21,459 nt of DNA from Selaginella moellendorffii (Eukaryota > Plantae > Lycopodiophyta), in contig NW_003314337.1 in assembly GCF_000143415.4 (NCBI RefSeq), positions 282,439 to 303,897 on the forward strand, in the 5' to 3' direction. Positions within the stretch are counted from its first letter, which is position 1. Every line of letters begins with the position of its first letter. The position numbers were made by a program, and so were the translations under genes. Below are positions 1 through 19,776 of the stretch, in pieces. Below the pieces are notes generated by a model. The model worked only from the letters and a program-made list of their open reading frames with translations. It did not search any database and had not been told where the DNA came from.

Positions 1-203
1 AAGTATATCACCATTGATGTTGGCATTGGAAGGTCCTAGAAGTGGGCCTATCCTTCCGGAGTAGCATGTCGAGAGGACATGGCTATCCACTCAAGTTCAT
101 GCGTGAACTTGTGCACGATATGGTGGATGGAAAAGGGGCCAATAAAGGAACGACTTTGGGATCTTGGGAACAGTATATGGTTTTCCTCCGAAAGTTGAGG
201 ATG

Positions 204-303
204 NNNNNNNNNNNNNNNNNNNNNNNNNNNNNNNNNNNNNNNNNNNNNNNNNNNNNNNNNNNNNNNNNNNNNNNNNNNNNNNNNNNNNNNNNNNNNNNNN
301 NNN
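204..303. other. Assembly gap (100 N)
   Basis: N run. Confidence 1.
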
Positions 304-667
304 TATAGTTGGGATCACGGGAAAGATAGAGACTCCAAAACAATAAAGGAGTCACAAGATTATCCTCATATAGTTGAGGTTGGTGCTCATGAATGTAAGA
401 CCAGAAGTAATGACCGTGGGAGGTCAAATACGGAAGAGGACTCAAGTCCTTGAAATGGTAGCCGGGGCTACCTTTAATAAATGCTGGACCAACCCAAGGA
501 CTAGGGGTGTACTCAGAGGATGAGTTGGTATTTTCATCACATAGACAAGTGGTCCTAAGGGGCAAAAGGTTGCCCCAAGAGAACAAATCAAGTGTCAAAG
601 TAACACTTGCAAAGATGGTCCTTGTGAGGAGGACCTGAATACAAGAAGTTGTATTCCAGTGAGCTAG

Positions 668-1318
668 TGTGAGACACAAAATCCCTAGGCCCCAAAGTGG
701 AGCCGGAAGGGCGCCACATGGTAGTGGCCGAAGCGAGAGCCAAACGAGCGTAACATGTTTGGACCAAAAGCTCCGACTTGAAAAGTCAAGAGCGGGAGTG
801 GAACTCCCAACGAAGTGCTCGAGGAACGAGCACGAAGCGAGCAAAAGGCGAGGCTCCAAAAAGGGACCCAAAAGGACCAACACATGACATGTGGGAGTGT
901 CCGAGATGGAGTCCGAAGTGGAGTCCGAGGTGGACCCGAGTTGGAGTCCGAAGTGGAGTCCGAGATGGACCCGAGATGGACCCGAAATGGAGTCCGAGAT
1001 GGAGTCCAAGATGGACCCAAGATGGACCCGAGATGGAGTCCGAGATGGAGTCCGAGATGGAGTCCGAGATGGACCCGAGATGGAGTCCGAGTTGGAGTCC
1101 GAGATGGAGTCCGAGATGGACCCGAGATGGACCCGAAATGGAGTCCGAGATGGAGTCCGAGATGGACCCGAAATGGAGTCCGAGATGGAGTCCGAGATGG
1201 ACCCGAGATGGAGTCCGAGATGGAGTCCGAGATGGACCCGAGATGGACCCGAGATGGAGTCCGAGATGGAGTCCGAGATGGAGTCCGAGATGGAGTCCGA
1301 AGTCGAGACCGAGACCGG

Positions 1319-1350
<32 letters not shown>

Positions 1351-2466
1351 TCGGGACCGAGACCGAGACCGAGGCCGAGGCCGAGACCGAGCCCGAGCCC
1401 GAGTCCGAGTCCGAATCCGAATCCGAGTCCGAGTCCGAGTCCGAGTCCGAGTCCGAGTCCGGAGCCTGAGAGGGTGAAAGCCCAAAGCGTTCGTCTCCCA
1501 GACCCTGGGGGGTTTGGTGAGCTCCAAAAGTATAGTAGGGGGAGGACTGCAGTGGAGCCAGTTTGGCCAGGAAAGGCCAGTTTGGCCCAGGAAGGCCAGA
1601 CCCAGTGTTGGGTGATGAACTGACCACTGGGAAGTCCAAGACTAGAGTGAATACGGACCGACAAGCGGGGTAGCTTGGTGAAGTGTTCAAGAGCCGGCTC
1701 TAGTTCCCCCGGGAGATCGACTGGCCGATGCTCCCAGTCCAAGTGTGGGTGGCACTACCTACTTGGATACCAGGCGTGGCTCAACGGAACCTCGCTCTAA
1801 GCCCATGGCTAGAGCACCTAAAGGCGATAGGTGGGGAGAGTACCCAGGTGGCTCGCGTAAGGCCACGGTGTTCCGAAATGTCGTCCCAAAGGCCCAGACT
1901 GTGGAAAGGAAGAGGAGCAGTCCTCTGGGGTAGTGACCAAGGACGCAGTCGTGTGGTGAGGAAGTCCCAGAGGACCGTGGGACTTAGGGGTCGGGCCTGT
2001 GGGCCTCGATCCAGTGGCAGTGTTGGCAAACACGGCCAGGGGCAGAAAGGGACTTGGTAGGAACTGACAAAGGGACTTTGGGGAAGGCGATTCCCTAGGT
2101 CTGTGGGCATCCTAAGGATGCTAAGGAGTGGATCCAGGATGACCCCTCGTAGACAGATGGCCCAGTCTTGGAGAGACGGGATGGTGATGCAAGTGGTATT
2201 GGACCATTTGCGCAGCAAAGGTGAATGGGCATGGCCTTAGCGTAACAGGCCGAGATGTCAGTGGTACCTTTGGGTGTCGGTCATGGGATCGGACACGTGG
2301 AGCACTTGGACCAAGTGCAAAGGTTGAGTGGCATGGATGCCATTCTCGGGGCTAGCAAGCCCCAAGTCCTGAATGGGACTTATGGAGGTTGTGAATGAGA
2401 CTCCTCCAAGTGGTCGGAGGTGTGGTTAAGTGACTAAAGTAGAATGGAAAAATTTAGTCACCTACA
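668..2466 (+). mobile_element. Solo LTR (1799 bp) of the large-LTR family
   Basis: TGTGAG...CCTACA termini; 5-bp duplication GCTAG at 663-667 and 2467-2471; about 95% identical (by eye, outside the array) to 5044-6780; no canonical TGG PBS after it and no PPT before it. Confidence 0.9.
901..1470 (+). repeat. Compound tandem array inside LTR: 34 units of CCGAGATGGAGT (12 bp) / CCGAGATGGAC (11 bp), then (CCGAGA)n and (CCGAGT)n
   Basis: 11/12-mer block 901-1296 (22 x 12 + 12 x 11 = 396 bp); hexamer block about 1304-1458. Confidence 0.97.
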
Positions 2467-3530
2467 GCTAGCACCTCAAAAATAGGACCTTATGGGTCGT
2501 TGGATTAGCAAAAGTCCAAAATGCTGGATGACTCAAGTGGAGTCAGGGAATGGTCTTAAGGGATTGGTTGAGGCATTTGGACTGAGGTGTATGGCGCCCT
2601 ATGAAGTATGGGGAGGATCATAAGATCCAAGTATGAGAACAGTAGGTATCTCATTGATGGCAGAATGTGCCATACTAAAGTTGTGGGAAAGATATTCCCA
2701 GAAGAAAGCAACTTTGACCCAGGTTTGGGTGCAAACTCTATGGTGTGGTGCTAACAGATAGTTAGCATGAGGAACAATTATATTGGTCTTGGCAAAGACC
2801 TAGACACTAGTAAGGAGTGTCATAAGGATAGGCTCGTGGGGGCTCGAGGGTGTTGCCGCTAGCAACCGTGATGCCATGGAGAGTCTAAAATATGGAATTG
2901 TTCATGTTAGACTATATGGTAATTGGAAAGCTTGCAAAAAGGGAGGCCTTAGCAAGCTAAAGGACAGAGTTCCTTCAAGGTTCCCAAAGATGATTCTAGG
3001 TAGCTTAGTACCTAGAAAGGCCAAGCGTAAATGGTTCAAGGAACGCCCGAAATCAGAATGGCGCAGCAGAAGCGTGGTCTTGAAGCTTGCCATGAGGCAA
3101 GGCTATCAAGGTTAGGGAAGTAGTTTCCGAGTGTTCAAAGAGAGGGCTTTGAATGAAAGTCGATGATCAAGGGCTTTCACGCTTGTGCAGAAACCATGTT
3201 ACAGTGGTCGGAGGGCTTGCCAAAGCGAGATTTGCAAGTCAGGGGAATAAATACCCTAGTTGAAGGTGATAACTTCAAAAGGGGTGGGCCATGAGGCCAA
3301 GCATGGAGGAGTCCATGCATGATCATAGACTTGTCAAGTGAGAGGGCTTGGTAGTGTGGAGGAACTAGGTTCCTAAGCTATGATCTGTAGCGCGCTTTGA
3401 GTATAAGTTGGTGCACCGGCGTGGGAGTCACGCCAGGCATCCTGGGTGATGCCGTCCGTAGATGCATATAAGGAGGTTGGGTTTGAGTCCCGACCCTCTA
3501 GTGCTTGGGTTCGAGTCCCAAATTGCTAGG

Positions 3531-3822
3531 GTGTGGTGATGGTTTGGAATATGAGGACACTCATATTTCGGTGGTCATGGACTCTCAGTGAGGAGACTGG
3601 TTTGGGCACACCGCCAAGCGAGGGATGCCTCGGAGTCGTGATGCACGGTTAGATTGCTTAGAGTGAAAGCTCGGCATATCTAACTTGAACACTTTGGTGC
3701 AAAGGGCACCAAGGACGTGGTGAATGAGATGGGGACACCCAGTCTCAATTGCTATGGATCCTTGGCCGGAAGAGCTGGCTTGGGCGCACCGCCAAGCGTG
3801 GGGGATGCCCCCGGGGTCATAG
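3531..3822 (+). repeat. Diverged ~180-bp direct duplication containing hairpins
   Basis: GTGGTGA..ATGRGGACAC..ATGGA..CTGGYTTGGGCRCACCGCCAAGCG..GGGATGCC..CGGRGTC at about 3533-3640 and 3717-3820. Confidence 0.8.
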
Positions 3823-4855
3823 TCAACAACTTAGAAGGGTCTGGAAGACCTAGTCCCTATTGGTAGACTTATTAAGGGGTCAAGATGAGATCACTAGGTG
3901 ATCTTGTGGCTAAACAAGGACAAGGTCTTTGTTTGGGTTAAGGGATATGATTCCTAGTTCAAAGTGTTGATTTGAACTACTGATAATGGTGTGGCTTGGT
4001 CAAGGTGACCAAGTGGGAAGAGCATCTATGGGAAATGAGCTATGTCACGGCTATGGCATAGTAAGTCTGAGGAAAGTAGTCTCTATAAAAGATCCAAGGG
4101 AAGGTCTCAAAAGTTGGGCCGTGGATAGAGCACACAGTAGGAAATGCTAAAGAGACGTACTAGGGGTGAGCACCCTTTGGATTTGGCAAAGTAAAGTCTT
4201 TGCTATGGAATCAAGAGGATACCTCGACAATGGAGGTAATGATCCGATGTTGTTAGGTGCAACAATCCAAGGATAGGAGTAAAAGACGAGTGCCCAAGAT
4301 AGGGCTGTGGAATCCATTGGAAAGAATTCAAGTGGCAAAGTTAGCCAAGGAATACTAATGTGTTTGATGCTAACGGATTGCGGAAAAAGAAGTGGACTTC
4401 CAAGGATAGATTCCCAAGTGCTCCGATTTGGCGAAGTAAAAGCTCCAAGTGAGGAGTGGCAAAGTAGCCAAAAGATAGGGCCGTGGACAGCCCTAGCACA
4501 AATAATGATAAATGGAACGTAATGCCAATGGTGGCACAAAAATAGAAAAGAGGATGAGGGTGCTCTCGAGTAGAGAACTTCCTAGGAGGGGAAGTGGAGT
4601 TGCACAAAATGTGCAAGGCAAGGTGTCGGAGACACCTAGGAAATTGACTCCAAAAAGTCAAGAGTAAACGTTCCAAAGTGCAAAGGTAGATCAATGGAAT
4701 CTGTGACTACTCAAGAATGAGTAGTGGAATTGAGTTAGAGAGGGTGTCTCTAACGGGTTTAGCAAGAATTGAACCAATAAAAAGGGAACAAACCACCCCA
4801 GGTGGTCAAGTGAGTCTCTAAGTTGGAGAGACTATCCTCCTTAGAGGATGGGCAA

Positions 4856-4942
4856 GGCATGGTGAGCCTTTGGTGTCGAACCATTGACGAATATGGAGAA
4901 GGCATGGTGAGCCTTCAATGTCAAACCATTGACAAATATTGG
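4856..4942 (+). repeat. 45-bp-period tandem duplication
   Basis: GGCATGGTGAGCCTT...TGTC.AACCATTGAC.AATAT at 4856 and 4901. Confidence 0.9.
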
Positions 4943-5002
4943 CTAGGGGTCAAGGATGGAAATGGTAACACATGCGGGTGTTACTTTATAAATTGGTTTA
5001 CC

Positions 5003-5043
5003 GTTCGATGAGGACATCGAACTTCGTCTATGGGTGGTGGAGT
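5003..5043 (+). promoter_or_regulatory. Pre-PPT hairpin and polypurine tract of the large element
   Basis: GTTCGATG-AGGA-CATCGAAC perfect 8-bp stem (5003-5022); GGGTGGTGGAG (5032-5042) one base before the LTR TG. Confidence 0.75.
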
Positions 5044-6780
5044 TGTGAGACACAAAATCCCTAGGCCCCAAAGTGGAGCCGGAAAGGGTGCCACGTGGTA
5101 GTGGCCGAAGCAAAAGCCCAAACGAGTGTAACACGTTTGGACTAAAAGCTCTGACTTGGAAGGTCGAGAGCGGGAGTGGAACTCCCAACAAAGTGCTCAA
5201 GGAGCGAGCACGAAGCGAGCAATAAGCAAGGCTCCAAAAAGGGACCCAAAAAGGACCAACACACGACATGTGGAAGTGTCCGAGATGGAGTCCGAGGCGG
5301 ACCCTAGTTGGAGTCCGAGATGGACCCGAAGTGGAGTCCGATATGGAGTCCAAAGTGGAGTCCGAGATGGACCCGAAGTGGAGTCCAATATGGAGTCCGA
5401 AGTGGAGTCCGAGATGGAGTCCGATATGGAGTCCGAGATGGACCCGAAGTGGAGTCCGAGATGGAGTCCGATATGGAGTCTGAGATGGACCCGAAGTGGA
5501 GTCCGAGATGGACCCGAGATGGAGTCCGAGATGGAGTCCGAGATGGACCCGAGATGGAGTCTGAGATGGAGTCCGAGGTGGACCGAGACGGAGTCTGAGA
5601 TGGAGTCCGAGATGGAGTCCGAGAAGGATCCGAGATGGAGTCCGAGGTCGAGACTGAGACCGGGACCGAGACCGAGACCAAGATTGGGACCGGGACCGAG
5701 ACTGAGACCGAGGCCAAGGCTGAGACCAAGCCCGAGCCCGAGTCCGAGTCCGAGTCCGAGTCCGAGTCCGAGTTCGAGTCTGAGAGGGTGAAAGCCCAAA
5801 GCGTTCGTCTCCCAGACCCTGGGGGGTTTGGTGAGCTCCAAAAGTATAGTAAGGGGGAGGACTGCAGTGGAGCCAGTTTGGCCAGGAAAGGCCAGTTTGG
5901 CCCAAGAAGGCCAGACCCAGTGTTGGGTGATGAACTGACCACTGGGAAGTCCAAGACTAGAGTGAATACGGACTGACAAGCGGGGTAGCTTGGTGAAGTG
6001 TTCAAGAGCCGGCTCTAGTTCCCCCGGGAGATCGACTGGCCGATGCTCCCAGTCCAAGTGTGGGTGGCACTACCTACTTGGATACCAGGCGTGGCTCAAC
6101 GGAACCTCGCTCTAAGCCCATGGCTAGAGCACCTAAAGGCAAAAGGTGGGGAAAGTACCCAGGTGGCTCGCGTAAGGCCACGGTGTTCCGAAATGTTGTC
6201 CCAAAGGCCCAGACTGTGGAAAGGAAGAGGAGCAGTCCTCTGGGGTAGTGATCAAAGACACAGTCATGTGGTGAGGAAGTCCCAGAGGACCGTGGGACTT
6301 AGTGGTCGGGCTTGTGGGCCTCAATCTAGTGGCAGTGTTGGCAAACACGGCCAGGGGCAGAAAGGGACTTGGTAGGAACTGACAAAGGGACTTTGGGGAA
6401 GGCAATTCCCCAGGTCATTGGGCATCCTAAGGATGCTAAGGAGTGGATCTAGGATGACCACTCGTGGATACATGGCCCAGTCTTGGAGAGACGAGGTGGT
6501 GATGCAAGTGGTGTTGGACCACTAGTGCAGCAAAGGTGAATGGGCATGGCCTTAGCGTAATGGGCCAAGATGTCAATGGTACCTTTGGGTGTCGGTCTTG
6601 GGACCGGACACGTGGATCACTTGGACCAGGTGCAAGTGTTGAGTGGCATGGATGCCATTCTTGGGGCTAGCAAGTCCCAAGTCCTGAATTGGACTGATGG
6701 AGGTTGCGAATGAGACTCCTCCAAGTGGTCGGAGGTGTGGTTAAGTGACTAAAGTAGAATGGAAAAATTAGTCGCCTATA
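5044..6780 (+). repeat. 3' LTR (1737 bp) of the large element
   Basis: TGTGAG...CCTATA (CA mutated to TA); colinear with 668-2466; flanks GGAGT and GTTCA differ, so it is not a solo LTR. Confidence 0.9.
5280..5784 (+). repeat. Compound CCGAG-core tandem array inside the second LTR
   Basis: 31 units at 5280-5641 (22 x 12, 8 x 11, 1 x 10), then CCGAGA/CCGAGT hexamers. Confidence 0.97.
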
Positions 6781-7458
6781 GTTCACATACTTCGCAATCA
6801 TCCCTTTAAATGTTCAAACGAGCCGTTCCACTAGACCGTTTAATTGTGGATGATAAGCACTCGTGAAAGTGTGGCATATCCCCAACTGAGACGTCAAAAC
6901 ATGAAATACTTCAGCCATAAATGTGGGACCATTATCTAAAAGAATCTGCTCTGGATAAAAATGCTGGAACACCACTCGATTGAGGAAGAAGTATCTAACA
7001 GCAGTTGCAAAGGCATTAGCAAGAGCACCAACTTCCACCCAACAAGTCAAGTAGTTAAAAGCAATAATAACATACTCATTGCTAGCAGTCGACTGTGGAA
7101 AAGGTCCCATAAAATCAAATGCCACCAACTCAAATGGACGGGAAATTGCAATTGACTCCAACTGTCCTTCCGCAGCACGAGGGGGAGTATTACGAGCTTG
7201 GCACCAAATGCAGCTACGCACATACCAGATAATATCACGTGGCATCTTCGGCTAATAGAAAGACCTATACAGCTTCTCGGTTACACGACGATGTACTATA
7301 TGCCCACCTAGAACAGGAAAATCATGGTAGGCATGGAGAAACCACAGAATAACGATAGAAGGCACCACCAGCCATAAATGATCATCAGGATTTGCCCCCA
7401 CAAAATAAAGAAGGCCGTCTTCAAGGCAATATAGAGAATGTAAATGCCGAAAAGGCAA
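6781..7458 (-). pseudogene. Integrase remnant (zinc-binding HHCC and catalytic core)
   Basis: HAYHDFPVLGGH, YVRSCIWCQ, RPFELVAFDFMGPFP, QILLDNGPTF, TSAYHPQLNGLVER; split across frames. Confidence 0.95.
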
Positions 7459-7649
7459 GTAATCAACAAGTGATGTAGGATTCTCAAACCCATCTCGAAG
7501 CCTTTGAATCCACGGCTCAATCTTTTAAACCTTAGGAACCTCATCAAGAGAAGGTAGATCTTACTCTGCACCTTGTGGATACTAAATGTCAAGTACAACA
7601 ACTGCCGAAGGCACAGAATCCTCGTTGATAGCACTTTGAGATCCACAAA

Positions 7650-8560
7650 CACCCGCTACTAATCCGGAGACTAGATGAAAGATGATGTTGATGACTTCAG
7701 CAATGCTTGCAACAATGTAGTGCGATCAGAAAGATGATCCATAAACCGACCGAGATACTACCTTACCCAAGAAGCGCTGCACATCATTCACACCCTTCGG
7801 AGTAAGGAACTTTAGAACAGCCACAAGTTTGTCAGGATCAACTTGCAAACCCTCACGAGAAATATGATACCCAAGATAAATTGTGTCCTTGGACCCAAAC
7901 ACACACTTTGACCACTTCAACTTTAAACCAATGTCACGTAGTTGATCCAACACTTTACAAATATCACGAATGTGCTTCTCCCACATCCCTCCAAGTGGAT
8001 CAAGACATCATCAATAAAGTCAGTAGTCACCTCTAGCATATGGCAAAGAACTTCATCCATCATCTACTAGAAAGTTGTTGGAGCATTGTTCAAACCAAAC
8101 AGCATCACCAAGAACTCGTACAAACCAAATAATGTACGAAAAATAGTCTTAGGAATATCTTCTTCAGCCATCAGTACTTGCCAGTACCCAAAAGCAAGTT
8201 CCAGCTTGGTGAACCAACGACTTCGCCCCAGACGATCTAGGAGATCAACAGTGTGAGGAAGAGGGTACACATCTGGGATCGTCACTTCGTTTAATGGACA
8301 ATAATCGATGCAAAAATGAATAATCCCATCGGGCTTCGTCACAAGATGAGGTTCACATGCCCAAGGACTCCGCAACTTCCGAATAACACCCTTCTCTAAC
8401 ATCTCCTTGATGTTTGCACGTAAAATCTTGATCTCCTTGGGTGACCGACGACAAACAGGAACCTTGATTGAACGAGCATCCCCAGTTAGAATCAGATGAC
8501 GTGTGGCAATCTTGGCCCCAGACGATAGGTCAAATTCAAAGAGATCAGAATACTCCTTCA
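7650..8560 (-). pseudogene. Reverse transcriptase remnant (RNase H deleted downstream)
   Basis: EMLEKGVIR..SPW, FCIDYCPLN, DVYPLP, GYWQV, LFGLNNAPTTF, DFIDDVLI, GLKLKWSKCVF, YLGYHIS. Confidence 0.95.
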
Positions 8561-8759
8561 TGAGCCAGTCAACTGCTGCAACACAAAGATCGTCGGAGGG
8601 ATCGGAAAAGGGAAGCGCAGAACAAGATGGAAACACAGGAGGAAATAGTGGGGGAACAAAAGTAATGGAAGCAGAGGTAGAAGTAGAGGGACGAAGAGGT
8701 ACGGATGTGAGAGGAATGGAGGAAAGATAAGGGAGTATGAGATAAGGGGGAGAAGCCTC

Positions 8760-9083
8760 AAAGTCACACTTGGCATGATTGCGCTGCAACCAATCCATAC
8801 CAAGAATGAGGTCAAAAGCTTGACTCGGCACCACCTACAATGACTGCAACTCAAGCTCGAGATCGCCCACATGCACAACCAGGTCTGCCTCATCCCATGC
8901 ACATGCATGTGTACGGCCATTGTCATAAAGAATGAAAACTGGTTCCACTGCACGATGCAAGTCTAGACGGCAACCTGTGGCAACAGGTCGAGCAATAGAA
9001 AATAAATTTGAACCTGTATCAACCAACACAGAGAGAATAATAGGAGATCTTTTGATATAAAAATGAGCTTGGAAAGTAAACAC
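8760..9083 (-). pseudogene. Aspartic protease remnant
   Basis: SVLVDTGSN active-site motif and FDLILGMDWL motif; interrupted. Confidence 0.92.
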
Positions 9084-9140
9084 TGGATGAACCGATGCCG
9101 AGTGAACCCCTTGATGATACTCTCGAAAGAAAGATGAAGG

Positions 9141-10074
9141 CTATTATTCGCGCGACTCCTCATTTCCTAGATACATCTTGGGGTCCAAACCTTCCACTGC
9201 AGCAGCACCAATGGGACGTTGCTAATGCAAGATCTCTACCTAGGAAATGGGGGTCTCCATTCGGAAAACACTGACAATGCCGATAAGTATGACCAACTTC
9301 ATCACACGCCTAGTAATGAACATCATAGCCACGACTACATCCTCGCCCTTGTCCTTGGACTCGAGCAGTAGTAGCATCAACCTCCATTGGAACAGGACCA
9401 TCACCCATAAGAAGTGGAGTTGAAGGACATGCAGTGAGAAGTGGAAGAGGCGACATCTCATAACATTGTGCCAAGCAAAGAGCATCGTCAAGGGTGGTGG
9501 GAGTAAGTGCATGCATAAGCCCGACAAGATCTTGACGAAGTACTGGCCACAACATTCCGAGCTTGATCCGCTCCGACATATTTGGCTCCACACGAAGCAA
9601 AAGACTTCGGAAACGAATGCCAAATTGCATCACCGACTCAGATGGCCCTTGGCAAAGACGATGCAATTGTTGGAAGGCATCATCACAGTCATTAGCATGT
9701 CCGAAAGTGTGTTTGAAGACGTCTGGGAGAACACTCCAATCCCCACGAGTGGCTACGCTCAAACCATTATACCACTGCAGCGCCGTCCCTTGGAGACACA
9801 TAGGAAACTCACACAAATGCCGAGCATCATCCCAAGAATGATATGTGGCAATCACTATGAAGTGATCGAACCAATGGTACACATCATCCCTAGGTTTTTT
9901 GCGAAAGAACTCCAGCCGAACGCGAGGATTGGCACCAAGAGCAGAAAGAGTTGGACCACGTGTCATAAACGCCGCCATCAATTGAGTTTGGTTGTTCAAT
10001 TGCAAGTGTATAGCATCAAGCAATTGTACCAACTGTTGCTCCAGAGTCAAAGGAGGAGATTGCTGATCTGCCAT
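9141..10074 (-). pseudogene. gag: Gag remnant
   Basis: LQGTALQWY, LCQGPSESV..F..RF, GPVPMEVDA, degenerate zinc knuckle (CDEVGHTYRHC) after a premature stop. Confidence 0.92.
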
Positions 10075-10290
10075 GAAGATGAACAAAAAAGAAAGAGCAA
10101 GAAAAGAGAAATGACAAAAAGCTAGAAGGAAATGGTAGATCTAGACAATGCAAAAAGCTAGATGTAAACCAAAATCCTGAAAGGAAAGAACAAAAGAAAG
10201 GACATGGAAAAAGCTAGATCTAGACGATGCAAAAGCTAAATCTAAACCAAAGTCCTAAATCCAAGCACTCTTCAGAGACAATCAAAGTTG

Positions 10291-10306
10291 CCTCTCACTT
10301 CCACCA
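10291..10306 (-). promoter_or_regulatory. Primer binding site, copy A (probably tRNA-Ala type, degenerate)
   Basis: TGGTGGAAGTGAGAGG one base after the LTR; resembles the complement of the plant tRNA-Ala 3' end (TGGTGGAGATGCGGGG, recalled from memory). Confidence 0.6.
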
Positions 10307-10307
10307 A

Positions 10308-10483
10308 TATGAGTGTTTGGAATATGGAAAGGGAATACAAAAAATGTGCATATCATTTAGCCTAGAAACCCTAGTTTATATACAGGAGTGAAGGGTCCTG
10401 ATTGAAACCAATCTGACAGCTACCAAAATCCCACTACGCTAATATTAATATACGGCATTGTAGTCATACACTTGGCCCTCACA
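10308..10483 (-). repeat. 5' LTR of gypsy copy A (176 bp)
   Basis: Reverse complement TGTGAGGG...CACTCATA matches 10934-11108 and 15261-15436; contains TATATAAA. Confidence 0.92.
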
Positions 10484-15150: not shown

Positions 15151-15244
15151 AGTTAATACCACTTAGAGATCTACCGATGCCTCCTTTTGATGTTCCTCTA
15201 GATCCCAGCCTATCTACAAGAGAATTCTGATGGTCTAATTATTT

Positions 15245-15260
15245 GGAGAGGAGGGGATGA
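15245..15260 (+). promoter_or_regulatory. Polypurine tract of copy B
   Basis: GGAGAGGAGGGGATGA immediately before the 3' LTR. Confidence 0.9.
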
Positions 15261-15436
15261 TGTGAGGTCCAAATGTACAGTTACAATGCCGTATACTAAT
15301 ATTAGTGTAATGGGATTTTAGTAACCATTGGATTGGTTTTAATCCAGACCAGTCGCTCTTGTATATAAATTAAGGTTTTTGGGCTAATTAATATGCATAT
15401 TTTTTGTATTCCCCTTCCATATTCCATGCATTCATT
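15261..15436 (+). repeat. 3' LTR of gypsy copy B
   Basis: TGTGAGG start; aligns end to end with 10934-11108; right end uncertain by 2 bp. Confidence 0.9.
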
Positions 15437-17312: not shown

Positions 17313-17616
17313 CTATTAGTCTTGGCATTGGCATGCTAAAAGTTCTAGGATTTTTCCAGGCAACTCCATGCTCCTATCCTTACACTCTTAGGGTTGTATA
17401 CCCAAGAGTCATTCTATGCTTTACTTCTTTTGTTGGCTTCATGTTTAAGAGTTTGGCTCCATCTTTTTGTTTAGTGGCTCAAGGCTTTGAAACTTGTGTT
17501 CCTCTTCACTACCCTTAGATATATGGTATATGGCATGTGAAGGGTTAAGGTTTTGTGCAATGGTTATTTTATGGTAAACCACTATAAGGTAAAGGGTGAA
17601 AACTACATGCATTATA
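17313..17616 (+). repeat. Old ~300-bp dispersed repeat, copy 1 (possible LTR relic)
   Basis: Colinear blocks shared with 19859-20144: GTCTTG..ATTGG, TCTAGGATT, ATTCTATG, GCTCAAG, TACCCTT, TGGTTATTTTAT.GTAAA, GGTAAAG.GTGAAAAC. Confidence 0.7.
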
Positions 17617-17640
17617 ACAGTCTATTTTTTAATTGCTATA

Positions 17641-18019
17641 ACATATATATATATATACATATATACATACATATATACATACATATATACATACATATAT
17701 ATATACATATATATATACATACATATATATATACATATATGTATGTATATATGTATATGTATATGTATACATATATGTATGTATATATGTATGTATATAT
17801 GTATGTATATATGTATATATGTATGTATATATATATGTATGTATATATATGTATATATGTATGTATATATGTATATATATATATGTATGTATGTATGTAT
17901 ATATGTATGTATATATGTATGTATATATGTATGTATGTATATATGTATGTATATATGTATGTATGTATATATGTATGTATATATATATGTGTATGTATGT
18001 ATGTATATATATATGTATG

Positions 18020-18053
<34 letters not shown>

Positions 18054-18054
18054 T
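17641..18054. repeat. Compound (AT)n/(ATAC)n/(ATGT)n microsatellite
   Basis: Read directly; ATAC-type up to about 17737, ATGT-type afterwards. Confidence 0.98.
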
Positions 18055-18524
18055 TACCTCTCTTTTTTACCTTTTACCCTTTCCCAATATTTTATTATTT
18101 TTCAGCCTAAGCTACCTTCTTCTGTTCCTAGTGTTTACTCCTTATTTACAGTGTTTCCTTCTTTTAGCATATTGATCATTTATAACTCTTATGATTCTCA
18201 TTCTCAGTCTAGTGTTTTTTGTCCTCCTCATTCAAATCTAGATGTTGAGAATATATGTGATGTTGAGAGTCTTGCTTTTGTTTTGTTAGTACAGTCTTTG
18301 ATCAGTTCTAATATTGAGTATTTTCTTGTTGGCCCTTTTAGATATTGTTTTTTATTATCACGACAGTAAAAGATTGGTATTATTGAACCCTTTATTAGTC
18401 CCTCTTGTTCAAGTGTTAGTAAATTGGACTTAGCATCTATATTGGCCATATGAGGGGGTTCCAAATATATAGTAAGAATAGTGGGTATGTTAGGCATGGC
18501 TGACCAACCTAAGATATAATTTAG

Positions 18525-19133
18525 TGTAAACAACCAAAGAGAACGACTTGAGAAACGATCCATGGGGTTCAAATATAGAGGGAAAGGGCCCATGAACAAG
18601 AGTGCACCCCCTTTTCCAATCGATTAAGGGTCTTGGGATATTTGGGTTAAGCGTCCTTGGGTTTGAATAGTGTTGGGCTGGGTGACCTCCCGGAAGTCCA
18701 AATTCAAGAGCTTACATTTGGTATCGAAGCTTACATTTGGTATCAGAGCGGTCTCGGGTCCGACTCTGTTGATTGGCTAGGGGAATCACACCACATGTTG
18801 ATTGACATCTGGCTGGTCCAGTTTGCTCCCACTGGGCTCGACCCGAGGGGTAGGGTGTCAAGAGAGCGGGGCTCTCGAGAGAGCTGCGGCTCTCAGCTTC
18901 CGTTCATGAGGGCGTGAACTTGCAAGGAAGCGTGGTGGATTGTAAGCAACCAAAGAGAACGACTTGAGAAACGATCCATGGGGTTCAAATATAGAGGGAA
19001 AGGGCCCATGAACAAGAGTGCACCCCCTTTTCCAATCGGTTAAAGGTCTTGGGATATTTGGATTAAGCGTCCTTGGGTTTGAATAGTACTGGGCTGGGTG
19101 ACCTCCTGGGAAGTCTAAACTTAGGAGCTTACA
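18525..19133 (+). mobile_element. Cassandra TRIM (non-autonomous LTR retrotransposon with 5S rRNA-derived LTR segment), complete
   Basis: LTRs 18525-18716 and 18941-19133 (TGTAA...TTACA); PBS TGGTATCAGAGC (tRNA-iMet) at 18738-18749; PPT before 18941; TSD TTTAG on both sides; no coding capacity. Confidence 0.96.
18646..18699 (+). promoter_or_regulatory. 5S rRNA-derived Pol III internal promoter segment (A box, IE, C box) in the Cassandra LTR; further copies at 19062-19115 (+), 19216-19270 (-), 19600-19654 (-)
   Basis: Consensus GTTAAGCGTCCTTGGGTTTGAATAGTACTGGGCTGGGTGACCTCCCGGGAAGTCC matches the 3' half of plant 5S rRNA. Confidence 0.92.
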
Positions 19134-19198
19134 TTTAGCTCCCCACTTGTGTGTTTGTTTTTATTTTGCATTTGGCTAGCTCAAGCTCTATACCATAC

Positions 19199-19776
19199 TG
19201 TAAGCTCTTGAGTTTGGACTTCCCGGGAAGTCACCCAGCCCAGTACCATTCAAACCCAAGGACGCTAACCCTNNNNNNNNNNNNNNNNNNNNNNNNNNNN
19301 NNNNNNNNNNNNNNNNNNNNNNNNNNNNNNNNNNNNNNNNNNNNNNNNNNNNNNNNNNNNNNNNNNNNNNNNTTACAATCCACCATGCTTCCCTGCAAGT
19401 TCACGCCCTCGTGAACGGAAGCTGAGAGCCGCAGCTCTCCCGAGAGCCCCGCTCTCTTGACACCCTACCCCTCGGGTCGAGCCCAGTGGGAGCAAACTAG
19501 ACCAGCCAGATGTCAATCAACATGTGGTGTGATTCCCTTAGCCAACCAACAGAGTCGGACCTGAGACCTCTCTGATACCAAATGTAAGCTCCTGAGTTTG
19601 GACTTCCCGGGAGGTCACCCAGCCCAGTACTATTCAAACCCAAGGACGCTTAACCCCAAATATCCCAAAACCCTTAACCGATTGGAAAAGGGGGTGCACT
19701 CTTGTTCATGGGCCCTTTCCCTCTATATTTGAACCCCATGGATCGTCTCTTAAGTCATTCCCTTTGGTTGCTTACA
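19199..19776 (-). mobile_element. Cassandra TRIM, second copy, inverted
   Basis: 5' LTR 19583-19776; PBS (TCTGATACCA on +) ending at 19580; internal 19378-19582; 3' LTR 19199-19377 spanning an N gap; TSD CATAC at 19194-19198 and 19777-19781. Confidence 0.95.
19273..19372. other. Assembly gap (100 N) inside a Cassandra LTR; about 115 bp expected from the sister LTR
   Basis: N run; both flanks match the LTR and the TSDs match across the gap. Confidence 0.95.

Follow-up and report, generated by a model that had tools for sequence, protein, structure and literature searches.

Elements of the Window

The window, the whole stretch of 21,459 nucleotides that was analyzed, contains a large LTR element of the LARD type with an LTR of the same family nested inside it, two copies of a small-LTR Ty3/gypsy element, and two short elements of the Cassandra type. 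The features are listed below with the evidence used to delimit each of them.

1–203, followed by an N gap at 204–303: short piece at the start of the window (self-comparison, ORF listing, and Pfam scans)
1–177, plus strand: diverged Cassandra-like interior, the probable leader of the LARD (alignment to Cassandra)
304–667: non-coding stretch (self-comparison, ORF listing, and Pfam scans)
668–2466, plus strand: 1.8-kb LTR copy of the LARD family, a nested solo LTR (self-comparison and 5-bp duplication)
2472–5043, plus strand: non-coding LARD interior, the continuation of 304–667 across the solo-LTR insertion (Pfam, tblastx, and GC skew)
5001–5049, plus strand: LARD 3′ cassette (hairpin 5003–5022, spacer 5023–5031, tract 5032–5043, and LTR start 5044–5049)
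5044–6780, plus strand: LARD 3′ LTR, TGTGAG...CCTATA, with GTTCA directly after it (self-comparison)
6817–10483, minus strand: degenerate copy of the small-LTR Ty3/gypsy element (self-comparison, ORFs, and Pfam)
10934 to ~15437, plus strand: second copy of the small-LTR gypsy element (81–84% identity to the minus-strand copy)
15225–15266, plus strand: 3′ end of the small-LTR gypsy element, a comparison site without the cassette (classical polypurine tract and LTR start TGTGAG)
18525–19133, plus strand: Cassandra copy 1 (5S matches, iMet primer-binding site, and duplication TTTAG)
19199–19776, minus strand, spanning an N gap at 19273–19372: Cassandra copy 2 (5S match, primer-binding site, and duplication CATAC)

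The plus-strand gypsy copy and the Cassandra pair are separated by AT-rich sequence that includes a compound microsatellite of ~550 bp at 17559–18110, which is self-complementary and has periods of 8–12 nt.

Both short elements are Cassandra elements. Matches to the Rfam family 5S_rRNA were obtained in three of their LTRs with scores of 38.4, 32.3, and 29.3 bits; the N gap interrupts the fourth. Copy 1 is 609 bp long and carries no genes; it consists of LTRs of 192–193 bp at 18525–18716 and 18941–19133 and an interior of 224 bp that includes a 19-nt duplication. The iMet primer-binding site TGGTATCAGAGC is matched exactly at 18738–18749 in copy 1 and with one mismatch at 19569–19580 in copy 2. 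The 5-bp target duplications are perfect, TTTAG/TTTAG for copy 1 and CATAC/CATAC (plus strand) for copy 2. These properties agree with the described Cassandra TRIM lineage (Kalendar et al. 2008; PMC7215508; PMC10853983), which has short LTRs with a 5S-like segment, the same primer-binding site, a G/T-rich tract, 5-bp duplications, and a length of ~0.6 kb without genes. The two copies (18525–19776) are arranged tail to tail at a distance of ~65 bp. As each is flanked by a perfect 5-bp duplication of its own, they are independent insertions at nearly identical spots.

The 19-nt duplication in copy 1 is a tandem repeat of the boundary where the LTR ends and the primer site follows (18710–18749). 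It creates two sequences that resemble a primer site, at 18719–18730 with 2 mismatches and at 18738–18749 with none, and could be the trace of an aberrant strand transfer.

The LTRs of the large element are 1.74–1.80 kb long, in direct orientation, and of the TG...CA type at their ends; 668–2466 and 5044–6780 are 90% identical overall and 95.2% identical over 1 kb of unique sequence. An assignment of 668–2466 as the 5′ LTR of the large element was considered and rejected. This LTR is flanked on both sides by a perfect GCTAG (663–667 and 2467–2471), a match expected by chance in about one of 1000 cases. Its downstream end is followed by GCTAGCACCTC and not by a primer-binding site, and the flanks of a unit of 668–6780, GCTAG and GTTCA, would not match. 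Thus, an older element was later invaded by a member of its own family, which landed in the interior and is now represented by the solo LTR at 668–2466. The older LARD has its 3′ LTR at 5044–6780 and an interior that reaches back through 304–667; its 5′ LTR and primer-binding site lie upstream of window position 1. No site resembling the iMet primer site was found in the window outside of Cassandra. GC skew is uniformly positive across 1–6780, and the LARD interior is like the LTRs in this respect. The 3′ LTR adjoins the gypsy copy on the minus strand at a truncated integrase (6781–6817), and the order of nesting is therefore gypsy, then LARD, then solo LTR. The LARD and Cassandra copies found here are old, with LTR pairs that are 92–95% identical.

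The large element is a non-autonomous LARD with an interior that has no coding capacity. The interior is called gene-less because none of the ten stop-free pieces from 1–667 and 2467–5043 matched a Pfam family and because 304–667 and 2472–5043 showed no tblastx similarity to the gag-pol genes of the window. The suggestion of the earlier note, that the large element is a lead to the autonomous partner of Cassandra, is not borne out by this interior, in which no Pfam domain and no gag-pol similarity (gag, protease, RT, RNase H, or integrase) was detected. In its long LTRs, its multikilobase interior without gag or pol, and its formation of a solo LTR, the element resembles the LARDs of Kalendar et al. 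2004 as these are summarized in PMC7215508. It differs from other LARDs in the Cassandra-type sequence of its leader and 3′ end.

The LARD LTRs contain an array of 11–12-nt repeats of ~600 bp (855–1500 and 5245–5820). The array gives rise to long spurious ORFs on both strands and accounts for most of the difference in length between the LTRs at 668–2466 and 5044–6780. A protein search with an LTR ORF returned no match, and ten ORFs of the window are absent from the protein collection. A search of the LARD LTR for RNA families, 5S-like or other, gave weak matches below threshold only.

The 3′ Cassette and the Probable Cassandra-like Leader

The LARD interior ends in a hairpin at 5003–5022 with 8 perfect pairs and the loop AGGA, a 9-nt spacer (5023–5031), and the G/T-rich tract GGGTGGTGGAGT (5032–5043), which abuts the LTR start TGTGAG at 5044. 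The same order is found in Cassandra copy 1, with a hairpin at 18902–18919 (7 pairs including one U·G, loop AGGG), a spacer, the tract GTGGTGGAT at 18932–18940, and the LTR start TGTAAG at 18941. On the minus strand, the hairpin of Cassandra copy 2 at 19399–19416 has 7 perfect pairs, as the earlier note had claimed for this stem, and the polypurine tract occupies 19378–19386. The cassette strings quoted in that note for 5001–5049 and 18900–18946 are likewise all present at those positions.

A local alignment of LARD 5001–5049 with Cassandra 18900–18946 has 37 identical columns out of 50 and a score of 27. Among 981 tiles from outside Cassandra, the LARD cassette is the top match to the Cassandra cassette, with this score standing against a background of 12.8 ± 2.4. 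A position-matched test was conducted with the last 60 nt of the interior and 6 nt of the LTR, using 1000 dinucleotide shuffles and two scoring schemes. Scores of 27 (shuffled, 12.4 ± 2.1) and, with looser scoring, 40 (shuffled, 15.5 ± 3.1) were obtained for LARD versus Cassandra, and 0/1000 shuffles were as high under either scheme. Beyond the cassette, the final 200 nt of LARD interior are not significantly similar to Cassandra.

The cassette sample comprises four copies, all from one window, that represent two or three families. A structure-consistent alignment of the four sequences has 28 of 28 cells paired. One stem pair varies between C-G, U·G, and U-A among the copies, and the extra G-C pair of the LARD stem appears as mirrored single-base indels relative to Cassandra; the two indels had been read earlier as one added G-C pair on opposite arms that leaves the pairing intact, and the alignment agrees with that reading. 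As a statistic, covariation among four sequences carries no weight (365/500 shuffles do equally well). The folding energies of the 46–48-nt cassette stretches are ordinary, with z values from −1.1 to −2.1. A covariance model of the hairpin was run over the 21 kb, and only four sites scored, at 19–31 bits, with the next different sequence at 12.2 bits; the model was trained on these same four sites, and the result thus holds by construction and is no independent test.

In a scan of viral-contig DNA, 120 chance matches to the hairpin motif were obtained, and the TGGTGGA tract was present in 0/120. A pattern scan of metagenomes for the cassette gave 15 matches, all of them chance-like. A minus-strand match to the cassette pattern and the 6 bases preceding it, at L015:1325–1365 in a metagenome contig of 69% GC that is presumably bacterial, was rejected as a coincidence. 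The matching segment cannot form the stem and sits in an apparent coding frame.

A second perfect hairpin is found just upstream of the cassette hairpin in both elements, at 4965–4984 in the LARD and at 18879–18894 in Cassandra. The stems differ (7 and 6 bp, respectively), and TGCG is present in both loops.

The second-best match of the window to the Cassandra cassette is located at 93–128. The hairpin at 93–110 has 7 bp with the same GTTCA/TGAAC core in its arms, and TGGTGGAT follows 12 nt further on as a pseudo-PPT (120–128). The whole of 1–177 can be aligned to Cassandra, across its interior and ~45 nt into its LTR, with a score of 71, compared with 30 ± 5.7 for shuffled sequences, of which 0/1000 score as high. 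By this alignment, the window begins ~35 nt after the expected position of the primer-binding site. The segment 1–177 is the probable leader of the LARD, downstream of an off-window primer-binding site and separated from 304–667 by the N gap at 204–303. Since 1–177 is Cassandra-like, Cassandra and the LARD are related at both ends of the interior. The LARD 3′ cassette is closer to the Cassandra cassette than to the leader copy at 93–128, and the two sites with a hairpin and TGGTGGA, 93–128 and 5003–5043, bracket the LARD interior.

The homology of the leader to Cassandra runs past the pseudo-PPT at 129–177, where ~45 nt resemble the start of the Cassandra LTR. This suggests that the interior and the start of the LTR were captured as one block at 1–177.

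Comparison with Other 3′ Ends

The small-LTR gypsy element has a classical polypurine tract, GGAGAGGAGGGGATGA, at 15245–15260. It is unlike the tract of the cassette, as had been stated earlier, and the primer site of this element is not iMet. The 3′ end of the gypsy element shows no similarity to the LARD and Cassandra cassettes (438–989/1000 shuffles do equally well). The LTR ends of the LARD and Cassandra had also been described as alike. They are alike, but the likeness is generic: the gypsy ends, TGTGAG...CTCACA, resemble those of the LARD and of Cassandra no less than the ends of these two resemble each other. The LTR termini carry no discriminating information, and the terminal part of the cassette is therefore uninformative. 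No chromodomain was seen in the decayed small-gypsy copies of the window, and a search of a protein collection with the gypsy PR-RT piece gave no match above 54% identity.

A cross-species sample of plant gypsy 3′ ends, fetched via protein matches, yielded two complete elements (L136 and L139) from one Tekay-like family, too few to rank families. The Tekay-like chromovirus L136, from a plant assembly in ENA, combines an iMet primer-binding site and the LTR start TGTAAG with a 6-bp palindrome around TGGGACG, a spacer, and a polypurine tract. The distance from the palindrome apex to the LTR is 25 nt in L136, compared with 27–28 nt in the LARD and Cassandra. In sequence, however, the Tekay-like cassette has no significant match to either, with 169/1000 shuffles as good for the LARD and 77/1000 for Cassandra. 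The Tekay-like 3′ end (L136:13226–13270) resembles 15225–15266 of the small gypsy element instead, with 14/1000 shuffles as good. The GGAC-type palindrome of L136 is of the kind named in the earlier caveat that GAGGAC-type motifs are common before the polypurine tract of gypsy elements.

Judged from these alignments, the general layout may be common among chromovirus-type elements, with the LARD and Cassandra sharing one particular version of it relative to the two comparison families. Within this small sample, the specificity of the cassette is supported by its absence from two elements, the gypsy element of the window and a Tekay-like chromovirus found in a different plant.

Origin and Possible Function of the Cassette

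We somewhat favor the explanation that two related non-autonomous families, the Cassandra TRIM and the LARD, have the 49-base cassette as their 3′ cis module, kept in both through the same or a closely related helper. Cassandra and the LARD are related, by shared descent or by recombination, and probably have one helper between them. That helper is not in this window, and the LARD is a fellow parasite of Cassandra and not its partner. The proposal of the earlier note, that the TRIM and the large element use the same or related RT and integrase, is in keeping with a cassette that is shared above chance, is specific in the small sample, and has a preserved stem; the sharing itself could also follow from common descent or recombination.

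A serious, though less likely, alternative takes the cassette as a relic of common ancestry or of an old recombination that says nothing about the present mobilizer of either family. It agrees with the age of the copies, all of which are old, with the Cassandra-like leader at 1–177, where homology continues beyond the pseudo-PPT into LTR-like sequence, and with the titles of PMC4079214 and Maiwald 2021, in which Cassandra elements appear as recombination-prone. The rest of the final 200 nt before the 3′ LTR of the LARD has no significant likeness to Cassandra, yet the cassette stem was kept by compensating changes, which suggests selection on the cassette and argues against a relic. We regard it as improbable that the likeness is generic and holds no family-specific information, with pre-PPT hairpins having a GGAC-type apex, G-rich tracts, and TGTRAG ends being common to chromovirus-type elements. 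The similar architecture, apex-to-LTR distance, and iMet primer-binding site of L136 are what such a generic likeness would predict, as are the LTR termini shared with the gypsy element of the window. The shuffle tests speak against it for the two other families sampled: the LARD and Cassandra match each other at a level that no shuffle attains, the Tekay-like cassette matches neither of them significantly, and its nearest likeness is to the small gypsy element.

The cassette has also been considered as a decayed remnant of the sequence coding for the C terminus of a polyprotein, with its stop inside TGTGAG as in Tekay-like elements. A frame of the LARD does encode 15 residues up to a stop codon within the LTR start, and L136 has a similar short frame that ends at the TAA in TGTAAG. 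The LARD frame is closed 17 codons upstream, however, and no common frame survives the single-base indels that separate the LARD from Cassandra, with base pairing conserved and not codons. The coding explanation is very improbable and was rejected on these grounds. A chance resemblance between two G-rich 3′ ends is the least credible of the explanations. The segment is short and there were several element pairs to choose from, but the score was reached by 0/1000 shuffles at a position fixed in advance and is the top one among 981 tiles, the indels are mirrored in the stem, and a third related site is found at 93–128.

The cassette is composed of a short stem-loop, a ~10-nt spacer, and a G/T-rich polypurine tract that abuts the TGTRAG end of the LTR. 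In the favored explanation, that of a module kept through a common helper, the tract would serve as the RNase H-resistant primer of plus-strand DNA. The putative role of the hairpin would be to help define or protect the tract and the RNase H cut or to aid recognition by the helper proteins. The module may have come to both families from one ancestral lineage or by an exchange through template switching, and it would have been retained because the RT/RNase H and integrase of the same or a closely related helper copy both families. A stem kept by compensating changes fits a cis signal for which both families would rely on one RT/RNase H and integrase or on related ones.

Cassandra TRIMs are found across vascular plants, and their mobilizing element was unknown as of 2024 (PMC10886601, according to which nothing points to the responsible autonomous family). 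In the entries of supplementary table 2A of PMC10853983, the Cassandra tracts across plants are G-rich and interrupted by T, with GTGGTGGTGTA in barley and GGGGGTGGAT in Rosaceae. G/T-interrupted tracts are thus the rule in Cassandra, and the tract of the LARD is therefore of the Cassandra type. No published account was found of a conserved pre-PPT hairpin in Cassandra or of a LARD relative. The module in common with a second non-autonomous family provides a genome-wide search key (hairpin, spacer, tract, and LTR end) for carriers of gag-pol. Dasheng and RIRE2 in rice are a non-autonomous and an autonomous element whose pairing is defined by shared primer-binding site, polypurine tract, and termini. 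There, as here, the helper is inferred from shared cis signals; here both sharers are non-autonomous. L136 has a GGAC-type palindrome, spacer, polypurine tract, TGTAAG, and iMet primer-binding site in common with the arrangement described here and differs in having no significant sequence similarity to the LARD/Cassandra cassette.

A bolder version of the favored explanation is put forward tentatively, and as a whole we consider it doubtful. The module of hairpin, spacer, and GTGGTGGA would be a helper-specific signal for plus-strand priming and recognition that marks one guild of parasites; the Cassandra interior would have formed when a jump between the bracketing hairpin sites fused the leader of the LARD to its 3′ end; and any autonomous chromovirus of this genome that carries the module would be the helper long sought for Cassandra. 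The kinship of the LARD and Cassandra suggests how the interior of a TRIM can arise from a larger element. A rice TRIM, OsajRetroS10, is derived from the larger element OsajLTRA10, with a "duplicated internal sequence" at the deletion break (PMC4717578). As in that system, the miniature element here shares its interior ends with a larger element bearing a repeated short internal sequence, here the hairpin sites at 93–128 and 5003–5043. In the rice pair the LTRs are shared and the large element is autonomous, whereas the LTRs of Cassandra and the LARD are unrelated and the large element is gene-less.
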